A stretch of 63,997 bases of DNA, the filler included, from Olpidium bornovanus S191 (taxonomy: Eukaryota; Fungi; Olpidiomycota): assembly GCA_017911155.1 (NCBI GenBank). It is 33 parts of 33 records of this genome, joined end to end, with 100 filler letters (N's around TTAATTAATTAA, not from the genome) between each part and the next. Parts side by side here need not be neighbours in the genome. Positions count along the whole stretch, not along the records: positions 56,836 to 58,743 come from JAEFCI010003483.1; 32 more parts are not named here. The stretch is one strand, 5' to 3'. A program made the position numbers and the translations under genes. This document shows positions 55,602-58,743 of the stretch, piece after piece (position 1 is the stretch's first letter; each line of letters begins with the position of its first letter). A model generated the notes under the pieces. It saw only the letters and a list, made by a program, of their open reading frames with translations, did not search any database and had not been told where the DNA came from.

Positions 55602-58059
55602 NNNNNNNNNNNNNNNNNNNNNNNNNNNNNNNNNNNNNNNNNNNNTTAATTAATTAANNNNNNNNNNNNNNNNNNNNNNNNNNNNNNNNNNNNNNNNNNN
55701 NCATGCCTGCAGTTCTCGAGCAGCTCCCTGTTCTTCGCGAGATCTACGCGTCCCTTCAAAGCAAAATCACGCGTCCCTGTCTCCTCAAGTCGCTATCTGC
55801 GGAAATCACAAACCAGGCCGAACTTAAATATATCGGTATCGAGACCACGTGGATTTAGTGGCTAAACAACCCACCAGCAACCGGGGGAGGAGGAAGGGGG
55901 GAGTTATCGGGCGTTTGAGCGTCATCCGATGTCAGTCTCGTCCCACGGCGCGCACGCCTGGCCGTCGTTCTCCTCGCCGAGTTCTTCCATCTGCCTCGCC
56001 CGCCTGTTGTCCACCTTTCGCATCGGACAACCAGTTCGGCGGCTCGTCGTGCCCGAATCCGCGCTCGACCGACGGCAGCGCGTCTATTGCCGGGGACTGT
56101 TGCCTGATCGAAAGAGCGTCCGCGGAGAGCTGGTACACGCACGGCGCGACGTGCTGGAGATGCCGCGCCTCGAAGCGGATCATCATGTTGTAATAGAGGA
56201 CCTCGAAGTTCATGATGAATGCCGGCCCGAGGAGAGTGCGGGGCGGATCAGGGAGGGTTACGAATATCGAGCGATATTGATGAGCGGACGTAGCGGGTGT
56301 GACACCGAGTGCGCCGCGGCGGTCTTAAAATCCCCTCGCGCTCACCCCGCGATCCAGCCAGCAGCGCCATCATCCTGAAGGACATCTTAATGTCGAGGTA
56401 GCCCGAGACTCGCAACTCGCAAGCGATGCGCGCGAGAGTCTCGAGTTCTGCGAGGTCGAACCGGCGCCTTTCCTTCGTGCGGAGCGCGGGAAGCTCGAGC
56501 ATCCTTTTTGTAATGGGAGATATTTTGCTTTTTTTCTCGTTTAACGCCGCAAACGAAGGCAGGAAACGGGGAACTACCGCGCCGCTCTCCGTTTCACAGG
56601 CAGGCGCGAAAGTACGCGGAAATTTCGCACAGCGCCCGTGAGGAGGCGGATTCTGTCGAAATGATTTTGCGGCAGGGGGGGCGACGGGAAGCCGACCGGT
56701 AACGGACGGGAATTTTTCGTCGGAACGGGCAGAAGNNNNNNNNNNNNNNNNNNNNNNNNNNNNNNNNNNNNNNNNNNNNTTAATTAATTAANNNNNNNNN
56801 NNNNNNNNNNNNNNNNNNNNNNNNNNNNNNNNNNNCATGAATGATGAGTCGATTCCGCTGTCTGTTGTTCAGTCTACCATTTCGTTTACAAGCACGCCGC
56901 GCACGCATTTCCACTTCCGCGTAAAATAAAGCGGCTAATCGCGGTGTCTCAAATCCGGCCCAAAACTGCGAGACGTCTTCCGCGTTCCCCCCAACTTTAA
57001 CCTCGTTTCCCCACACGCCATCGAGCGATTGTGAGGGGATACGACGCCCAAAAGTCAGCTTCCGCAGATCCCGCCTGACCTCTGGCGCGGATACAGGCTT
57101 TTAAACAAACTACGTGACTCTCTGACGTACGGGAAGGATGACACCCACTGGCAAAGCGACGGCTGATATCTATCACCCTTCCTTCCCCTCTTCCCCCCCC
57201 CCCTGTGCGGTTCCGGAGATCCGCCACCGAGGTCGACCATAACAACTGCTCCTCGCCGGTAGAAACGTTTATTTGGCGAAAAACACTTTACCCCGTGACC
57301 GTAAGGTTTTCTCGATGATATTTTTGGGCGACGCACCAGACGGGGAGCGGATGTGCGTACGTGTGTGTGCGTGCATATACGCGCGCGTGCGTCTGTGTTC
57401 GGGGTGTGCGTAGTGCAAAGAGTCGGCCGGAAGGGGTGTTCGGAAGGGGTGTTGGCCGGCCTCGGAATTCAGAAAGTTCAAACTATGCCAAGGGAGAAGC
57501 AAATTCCGCGGAGCTTATTTTTTAATTTTTCGCCAATTATAATCTGTGGCGGTCGTCGCATTTTGCGCAAATTTATGGTGTAATTCGCTGCAGGGGGACC
57601 GGCCGGGAATTTGCGGGGTGCGCGGTGGAAGGGAGGAGGGGGTGAGGGTGTGGGGGAACAGCCATACGGAAATTTTTTTCCCGGTCTTTTTTTTTTTTTT
57701 TTTTTTTTTTTTTCCGGTTGCGCACGTGCGTGGAAACCAAATCCGATTGCGACCGCTCTCGACTGACGGGAAAGTTGCGGTATGGAACATTCCGGCTCTT
57801 CAAAAAGAGGCGCTCGCAACGCGCATCCAACGCGAGCATTTCCCTAACGGCAGCGCTCGGACATACCGGCCTATTCGGCGTGGGAGCAAACACCCCCCCG
57901 CCCAACTCTGACAATCCCGCCCTATTTTCGGTGTGAAAGAGCAGCATCCGCTCTCTCCGCCATCGCAAGTTCTTTCTCAAACAGGAGCGTCGTCATTGCA
58001 GCTCTGGAGCACAAAAGATTTTAGACGAACGCACTAGAAGTTTACAGATAGACCGTAAA

Positions 58060-58743
58060 ATGAGCATTCGACGGATCCGCCAGGCGGAGATGCTCTCCCG
58101 TTCTGCAAGCAACGCAGACCTTTTGTCAGAGTCTTTGGTCGCCCGCTCGGTGATGCGCAAAAGCCTGTCGTGGCCCAGCATCGCAAACCCCAAGTTCGAC
58201 GGCTCCGTGCATCCCGCCCCGGCGCGCGGCACCAAAAGCCGGGATGCCCGGCGCAAGTCCGTGGCCGACAAACCGCGGCCCGCCTTCCGCAACGAGGAGA
58301 GCGTTTTCCTCGGCCTGCCGGTGGAGATCGGCTTGGAGATCCTTGAGTACTTCAGCCACGGGGACCTCCTCAGGTTCCGCGGGACCAGCAGGGACTGCAA
58401 GCGCATCGCGGACTGCCGGCTGAAGCGCACGACTGCGGCTCGGCTGGCGGCCTGCCGCGAAAATTTCGACGCGACCAGGGAAATGGTAGAATCAATGGAG
58501 GAAGCAGTCCTGCCGGGCATGGTGCTGAACCACCGCTACCTTGGGGTGGTCAGTAACTGGAACATCGACGAGCTCCGATGGATGCGCAACCCGAGCGAGG
58601 AGGTGCGGGTCGTTTGCCAGTGCATGCTGGCCCTGCAGAAGGGCCACTTCGCGCCGAACTACCTCGCGGAACGTTCCGAGAACGACGCCGCAAGGTTTGA
58701 GTCGTGGGCGTCTATTCGCGCCGAGATGGGGACCCTCGAGTTC
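58060..58743 (+). CDS. F-box protein with a downstream dynein microtubule-binding-domain-like segment, 3' partial
   Basis: F-box-like FLGLPVEIGLEILEYFSHGDLLRFRGTSRDCKRIA (from 58306), a helical linker, then VSNWNIDELRWMRNPSEEVRVVCQCMLAL...SWASIRAEMGTLEF. Confidence 0.65.

Follow-up and report, generated by a model that had tools for sequence, protein, structure and literature searches.

An F-box protein gene of Olpidium bornovanus, with relatives in chytrid fungi, that is predicted to carry a homologue of the dynein microtubule-binding domain

The window analysed here is a stretch of 63,997 nucleotides (filler included) from Olpidium bornovanus S191 (assembly GCA_017911155.1), composed of 33 parts joined end to end. 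Within the piece at 56836-58743 (JAEFCI010003483.1) one convincing gene was found. Its open reading frame runs on the plus strand from the ATG at 58060 to the edge of the piece at 58743, 228 codons with no stop codon inside the piece, which represents the 5' two-thirds of the gene. The piece covers the N-terminal disordered region, the F-box, the outgoing coiled-coil helix CC1 and, of the dynein-like microtubule-binding domain (MTBD), helices H1-H3 and the start of H4; the remainder of H4, H5, H6 (with R285 and R287) and the returning helix CC2 lie beyond the edge and were seen only in the closest relative, protein P0001 encoded by contig L001. The features of the piece are the following:

56836..57962, no strand assigned: upstream non-coding DNA, not part of the gene product (no Pfam and no credible Rfam matches)
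56837-57016, minus strand: 60-codon ORF running off the left edge of the piece, no Pfam match
57340-57400: GT/GC-rich low-complexity stretch, upstream
57428-57453: exact 13-bp tandem duplication (CGGAAGGGGTGTT, twice), a simple repeat upstream
57687-57713: T27 homopolymer, a simple repeat upstream
57963..58059, plus strand: probable 5' UTR, at the start of which mRNA-sized contigs of separate runs begin
58060..58743, plus strand: coding sequence (ATG-initiated ORF) for residues 1-228 of the 339-residue F-box/MTBD protein, cut by the edge of the piece
58060..58305, plus strand: N-terminal region, residues 1-82, basic, Ser-rich and probably disordered (pLDDT mostly below 50)
58306..58422, plus strand: F-box, residues 83-121, with LPVEIGLEIL (PF00646 and model)
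58423..58542, plus strand: CC1, residues 122-161, helix leading out along a short antiparallel coiled coil that resembles a stalk (model)
58555..58578, plus strand: MTBD helix H1, residues 166-173, with the invariant Glu171 (both models)
58597..58638, plus strand: MTBD helix H2, residues 180-193, P-[PS]-x-E-[VL]-x-x-V-C-x-C (DNAH10 alignment)
58639..58704, plus strand: residues 194-215, a variable stretch inserted between H2 and H3 where the 'flap' of axonemal dyneins is located (low pLDDT at 198-206)
58705..58743, plus strand: MTBD helix H3 (residues 216-223, with W216 and R220), followed by the beginning of H4 (alignment)

Contig L001 (1285 nt) contains the complete gene and places the stop codon after residue 339. 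P0001, its 339-residue product, is 98% identical to the window protein across all 228 residues. Comparison of the contig with the genomic piece showed that both are colinear and the gene is therefore intron-less. The GC content was 64% in the coding part versus 54% upstream, and third-position GC of the ORF reached 84%. Nei-Gojobori estimates of dN/dS were 0.15 for the window against L001 and 0.30 for the window against L004; between L001 and L004 the overall value was 0.29, with 0.19 for the MTBD part and 0.36 for the F-box. Values of 0.15-0.30 indicate that the gene is under purifying selection.

The N-terminal residues 1-82 gave no Pfam match and may constitute a regulatory region. The start motif MSIRRIR..AEMLSR is common to P0001, P0002, P0003 and P0005; it is conserved in the clade of the window protein and absent from the chytrid members of the family. 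As a separate observation, the motifs RKSLS and RRKS in the Ser-rich N-terminus resemble basophilic-kinase sites.

Contigs from several sources pass through the gene: L001, an X6 record of 1315 nt that starts at 57963, and X1 records that start at 57877. Because mRNA-sized contigs from separate runs begin near 57963 and traverse the gene, the transcript probably starts there, resembling an mRNA 5' end, although contigs cannot prove the end of an RNA. The gene appears to be expressed. In a sample of about 6% of the raw RNA-seq runs X23 and X24 the gene received no reads, a sample that constitutes no test of expression. A kinetoplastid origin, to which the poly-T and GT-rich upstream DNA had pointed, was rejected, since the transcript-like contigs lacked a spliced leader and were colinear with the genome, and all named relatives are chytrids. 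Relative to the piece, contigs from other public runs labelled with the same organism contain an inserted GTGG after 58056, four bases upstream of the ATG, which L001 shares, and a 2-bp deletion at 57906; both differences are polymorphisms of the presumed 5' UTR. In the 1.2 kb upstream of the gene, neither Pfam matches for the longer ORFs nor credible Rfam matches were obtained. The sole Rfam match there, mir-297, scored 23.5 bits against a gathering score of 90 and was discarded as a chance match. The T27 run, the 13-bp duplication and the GT/GC-rich stretch are located approximately 350-700 bp 5' of the start codon and thus probably in the promoter region, and the 60-codon minus-strand ORF could be a chance occurrence or the start of a divergently transcribed neighbour.

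The F-box was identified both by profile search and by structure prediction. Residues 83-118 (58306-58413) matched the Pfam F-box profile PF00646 with 24.4 bits (E 2.6e-5), above the curated cut-off of 20.5 bits, and the F-box-like profile PF12937 with 22.2 bits, slightly below its own cut-off. Relatives scored up to 37 bits, with modest matches in P0003 (E 1e-3) and P0006 (E 0.2). The predicted structure of residues 79-124 superposed on the F-box of Fbw7 bound to Skp1 (5ibk_B) over 46/46 residues in two models (Z 9.1 and 1.9 Å in one, Z 8.5 and 1.2 Å in the second) and also matched the Cdc4 F-box (3v7d_D). Within the family, the LP.E[IL] core and R107 are near-invariant. The F-box motif that the initial annotation had read from the DNA was thus borne out by a profile match above cut-off and by superposition on Skp1-bound F-boxes.

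The same annotation had recognised a resemblance of the C-terminal part to the dynein stalk tip in a motif, NIDELRW..NPSEEVRVVCQCMLAL, that corresponds to residues 168-192 (58561-58635) and is followed by W216 and IRAEMG..F. It had named the F-box and PF12777 for a Pfam search, of which the first passes and the second is not reached by the window protein alone. As a single query, this protein gave no sequence match in the PDB and only the F-box in Pfam, and the link to dynein requires a family profile or the fold. Among family members, one relative scored E 0.093 against PF12777, and one environmental member has a precomputed match. When a profile of 10 family members was compared with all PDB sequences, dynein heavy chains were the only strong matches: human DNAH10 (8j07_k8) at E 9.1e-15, bovine DNAH10 and the Chlamydomonas I1 alpha chain (8glv_Cn) at 1.7e-14, outer-arm gamma at 5e-7 and isolated cytoplasmic MTBDs at about 5e-5, with F-box proteins as weak matches. 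The alignments to dynein take in the entire MTBD, with the end of CC1 before it and the start of CC2 after it. A profile built from chytrid members only returned the same ranking, with DNAH10 at 2.5e-13, and the profile of the window clade alone had I1 alpha as its top match, in the correct region and weakly (E 0.25). By sequence comparison, the MTBD homologue has its nearest counterpart in the I1/f alpha heavy chain of the inner arm (DNAH10). The identity to DNAH10 is only about 15%, which indicates an old, separately evolving gene.

Structure prediction with AlphaFold yielded a mean pLDDT of 67 from 10 sequences and of 75 (pTM 0.65) from 52 sequences; in the latter model the F-box, CC1 and CC2 reached pLDDT 89-98 and the ordered MTBD helices 77-94. 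Both models consist of a long helix (111-161), six short helices (166-173, 180-193, 216-223, 226-240, 265-279 and 283-289) and a second long helix (291-338), the six short helices forming the MTBD between CC1 and CC2. The first long helix is continuous (pLDDT 90-98) and aligns with CC1 of DNAH10 and of Chlamydomonas I1 alpha. H2 aligns column for column with the DNAH10 stretch PPKQVQTVCECILIMK, and H3 aligns with the stretch W-K-T-A-K-G-V-M-S of the same protein. The insert between H2 and H3 is absent from DNAH10 and variable in length within the family, with up to approximately 40 extra residues in P0006. In many axonemal dyneins, a 'flap' between H2 and H3 touches the neighbouring protofilament (PMC6629372).

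All of the best 50 PDB matches returned by Foldseek were dynein heavy-chain or stalk/MTBD entries. In the VIA alignment the microtubule-bound MTBD of mouse dynein-1 (6rzb_C) took first place, with Z 12.6 and 2.9 Å over 146/149 residues, and Z 11.6 and 2.5 Å over 148/149 residues when the 52-sequence model was used; by themselves, VIA Z values of 11-13 are reachable by helical proteins through their arrangement only. Yeast dynein, DNAH7, dynein-c and whole-stalk structures followed, and unrelated helical proteins did not exceed Z 7. An MTBD-like fold, as the initial annotation had expected, was therefore recovered at 2.5-2.9 Å from solved MTBDs. Taken together, the profile E-values and the fold superposition settle that the predicted globule with its coiled coil is a true homologue of the dynein heavy-chain stalk tip/MTBD, and the resemblance first noticed in the motif is not due to chance.

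A separate structural match concerned the Chlamydomonas radial spoke structure 7jtk_C (radial spoke 1, residues 434-610), which aligned with residues 126-334 of the P0001 model at Z 10.0-10.3 over 168-170 residues, a fit comparable to that of some true MTBDs. This region could be a mere helical hairpin or an unnoticed MTBD-like module in a radial-spoke protein.

The contacts of the dynein MTBD with tubulin provide a basis for comparing individual residues. The conserved Glu of H1 adjoining CC1 pairs with R403 of alpha-tubulin, and the conserved Arg of H6 pairs with E416 of alpha-tubulin (Uchimura et al., PMC4298687). Family residues were matched to these contacts by helix position and alignment. 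In an alignment of 52 family sequences only nine columns are invariant; they include Glu171 in H1 and Arg285/Arg287 in H6, which align with the tubulin-contact positions of dynein. Position 220 in H3 is K or R in all 52 members. Moreover, E181, C188 and L192 in H2 as well as W216 and F228 are invariant, and W174, C186/C188 and W231 are invariants specific to the family that are not general features of dyneins. As judged from this alignment, the putative tubulin contacts by the H1 Glu and the H6 Arg are retained in the family. In dynein, CC1 and CC2 are each expected to have a proline where the stalk meets the MTBD. Here the CC1 proline (Pro152, at the end of CC1) is present in 96% of the 52 members, and the proline at the CC2 start of DNAH10 has no counterpart in the family consensus. 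Nothing was found that would set the coiled-coil registry which tunes affinity in dynein.

A word-indexed search retrieved relatives from Logan or ENA assemblies at 98%, 85%, 72-76% and 53-60% identity to the window protein. In an exhaustive phmmer search against 1.84 billion representatives, no more than eight proteins reached an E-value of 1e-3 or better. Distant relatives (P0006-P0011, 26-31% identity) all contain the F-box followed by the same C-terminal domain. Alignment of the profiles of the window clade and the chytrid clade with hhalign gave a probability of 99.7% and an E-value of 8e-27 over 277 columns, which extend from the F-box through CC2, and the spacing between the F-box and H1 is 88 residues in both. 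The profile-profile match together with the equal spacing shows that these proteins constitute one family with one architecture. Searching with the chytrid profile, the family was found to comprise at least 53 proteins, a lower bound because the search was word-limited. Every named member comes from Chytridiomycota, namely from Batrachochytrium (two species, the amphibian pathogens B. dendrobatidis and B. salamandrivorans), Spizellomyces, Rhizophlyctis, Chytriomyces, Cladochytrium, Caulochytrium, Lobulomyces and Homolaphlyctis. This distribution agrees with the link to flagellated fungi that the initial annotation had proposed to check by phylogenetic profiling.

In a maximum-likelihood tree of 58 members, the window clade (P0001-P0004) stands on a very long branch outside the named chytrid members and represents the most divergent branch of the family. 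In this clade P-S replaces P-P in H2, several residues near-invariant in chytrids are missing (e.g., K221A and R225T), and a 21-residue insert of its own, predicted with low confidence, precedes H5. The organism of the window clade may lie outside the sampled chytrid orders.

The names given to family members in databases are 'hypothetical', 'F-box domain-containing', 'expressed protein' and an automatic 'Dynein heavy chain 10, axonemal', and a feature search of the ESM Atlas returned only nameless or F-box clusters. In NCBI, the chytrid proteins P0010, P0013, P0020, P0024 and P0027, of 256-333 residues, have the last of these names, which was assigned automatically, is incorrect and conceals the F-box/MTBD architecture. 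In the literature no description was found of an F-box combined with a dynein MTBD, nor of an MTBD-like domain outside dynein. The view that this architecture has not been characterised, already expressed when the sequence was first read, accords with the generic or automatic database names and with the lack of a paper: the family is present in databases and apparently unstudied, and it appears to combine an F-box receptor with a domain that had so far been seen in dynein only.

On these grounds we think it reasonably likely that the protein is an SCF receptor whose dynein-derived MTBD docks on microtubules and which acts on tubulin or on lattice-bound proteins. The initial annotation had likewise put forward the targeting of an SCF ligase to microtubules or axonemes as an inference. 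The predicted F-box would bind Skp1 and so recruit the Cul1-Rbx1 core. The MTBD would be held about 7 nm away on a half-length stalk (CC1 and CC2 of approximately 50 residues each) and would dock the ligase on the tubulin lattice via the H1 glutamate and the basic residues of H3 and H6, and tubulin or lattice-bound proteins would then be ubiquitinated. The preferred target may be the axonemal doublet, for example in the retracted flagellum that is dismantled after encystment, because the MTBD derives from an axonemal dynein and the named members belong to fungi with flagellated zoospores.

Alternatively, the protein might be a microtubule-associated protein or a dynein decoy without a ligase role, which may compete with I1 dynein for the B-tubule site and in which the F-box is a Skp1-binding or dimerisation handle or vestigial. 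Such a role would fit the closeness of the MTBD to I1 alpha, the better conservation of the MTBD (dN/dS 0.19 compared with 0.36 for the F-box) and the modest F-box scores of P0006 and P0003, and F-box complexes other than SCF do exist. However, the F-box occupies the same position in nearly all members across a very long divergence and its LP.E[IL] core and R107 are near-invariant, which argues for a working Skp1 interface, and most Skp1/F-box pairs act in SCF ligases. We therefore consider a function without ligase activity unlikely.

Quite unlikely, too, is an SCF receptor whose MTBD-derived domain lost microtubule binding and instead reads another substrate, soluble or axonemal, or free tubulin dimers. 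The strong divergence of the window clade, with its own inserts, means that its MTBD could have changed partner, and the variable insert at the flap site as well as the family-specific W174, C186/C188 and W231 would be in line with such a change. Nevertheless, the Glu of H1 and the Arg of H6, which have the best documentation as tubulin contacts, and the basic position in H3 are invariant across the family, and the model superposes best on the microtubule-bound conformation of the MTBD. Finally, the NCBI name 'Dynein heavy chain 10, axonemal' of some members might suggest that the sequence is merely a remnant or a mis-assembled piece of a gene for a dynein heavy chain. This reading is extremely improbable and was rejected, since complete ORFs of 226-471 residues with start and stop codons occur in dozens of species, some of them on contigs of up to 4.5 Mb, the members carry an F-box, which dynein lacks, the gene is under purifying selection and covered by mRNA-sized contigs in several runs, and L001 has a stop codon after residue 339.

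For the SCF receptor, a more specific role can be considered in chytrid development. Chytrids retract their flagellum and degrade the axoneme, at least partly via the proteasome (PMC8887899, PMC12659703, PMC13358043), and two of these papers, PMC8887899 and PMC12659703, name no ligase for this degradation. It is conceivable, but at present doubtful, that the family provides the missing E3 receptor for the axonemal doublets of the internalised flagellum, so that SCF and the proteasome would remove the axoneme while cytoplasmic microtubules and the proximal centriole are spared. As part of this proposal, an MTBD copied from I1 alpha would read the same B-tubule surface. The family offers a testable candidate for the factor that targets the internalised chytrid axoneme to proteasome-dependent degradation. 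In the Batrachochytrium amphibian pathogens, it is with the transition from zoospore to cyst that growth on the host becomes established.

To our knowledge, the dynein MTBD has been described only at the tip of a motor of 4000 residues. If the axonemal role is true, the family would provide the first example from nature of a dynein MTBD that serves on its own as a targeting module. If the SCF receptor reading holds, the family would illustrate a way of directing an E3 ligase to the microtubule lattice as such and would supply a small, naturally occurring probe for lattice or doublet. Evolution would have done as laboratories do, namely cut out the MTBD and remounted it, here on a ubiquitin-ligase adaptor, and the closeness to DNAH10/I1 alpha would record a partial duplication of a dynein gene.

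The comparison with known systems summarises what is shared and what is peculiar to the family. In common with the SCF F-box receptors Fbw7/Cdc4 and Skp2, the protein has a predicted three-helix F-box with the LP.E[IL] core and a second domain after the F-box; in contrast to these receptors, a coiled-coil hairpin here carries a dynein MTBD as the second domain and not a WD40, LRR or other known substrate-binding module. With the dynein stalk tip (DNAH10; 8glv_Cn) it shares the order of CC1 end, H1-H6 and CC2 start, and with DNAH10/I1 alpha the signatures H1 Glu, P-P-x-x-V-x-x-V-C-E-C in H2, W-x-x-x-K in H3 and R-x-[VI]-S-x-A-G before CC2. A dynein heavy chain consists of a six-module AAA+ ring, a linker and a tail and has about 4000 residues or more. 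The F-box/MTBD protein, at 339 residues in total, lacks ring, linker and tail, and no AAA domain was found in the Pfam search of the full-length relative, which ends in a stop codon. It is therefore a motor-less MTBD, as the initial annotation had supposed, and it is not a dynein. Its stalk is about half the length of that of dynein, with the F-box joined at the N-terminal end of CC1, and inserts of its own occupy the flap site and, in members of the window clade, the position ahead of H5. Further counterparts are the chimeras of seryl-tRNA synthetase and MTBD (3err, 6rzb and 6rza), in which an MTBD is likewise mounted on a short stalk with a non-dynein base. These engineered chimeras bind and decorate microtubules without a motor (PMC6629372), and a motor-less MTBD is therefore enough for binding. 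Whereas the chimeras are laboratory constructs with a fixed registry, the family described here represents a natural fusion with an F-box as its base.
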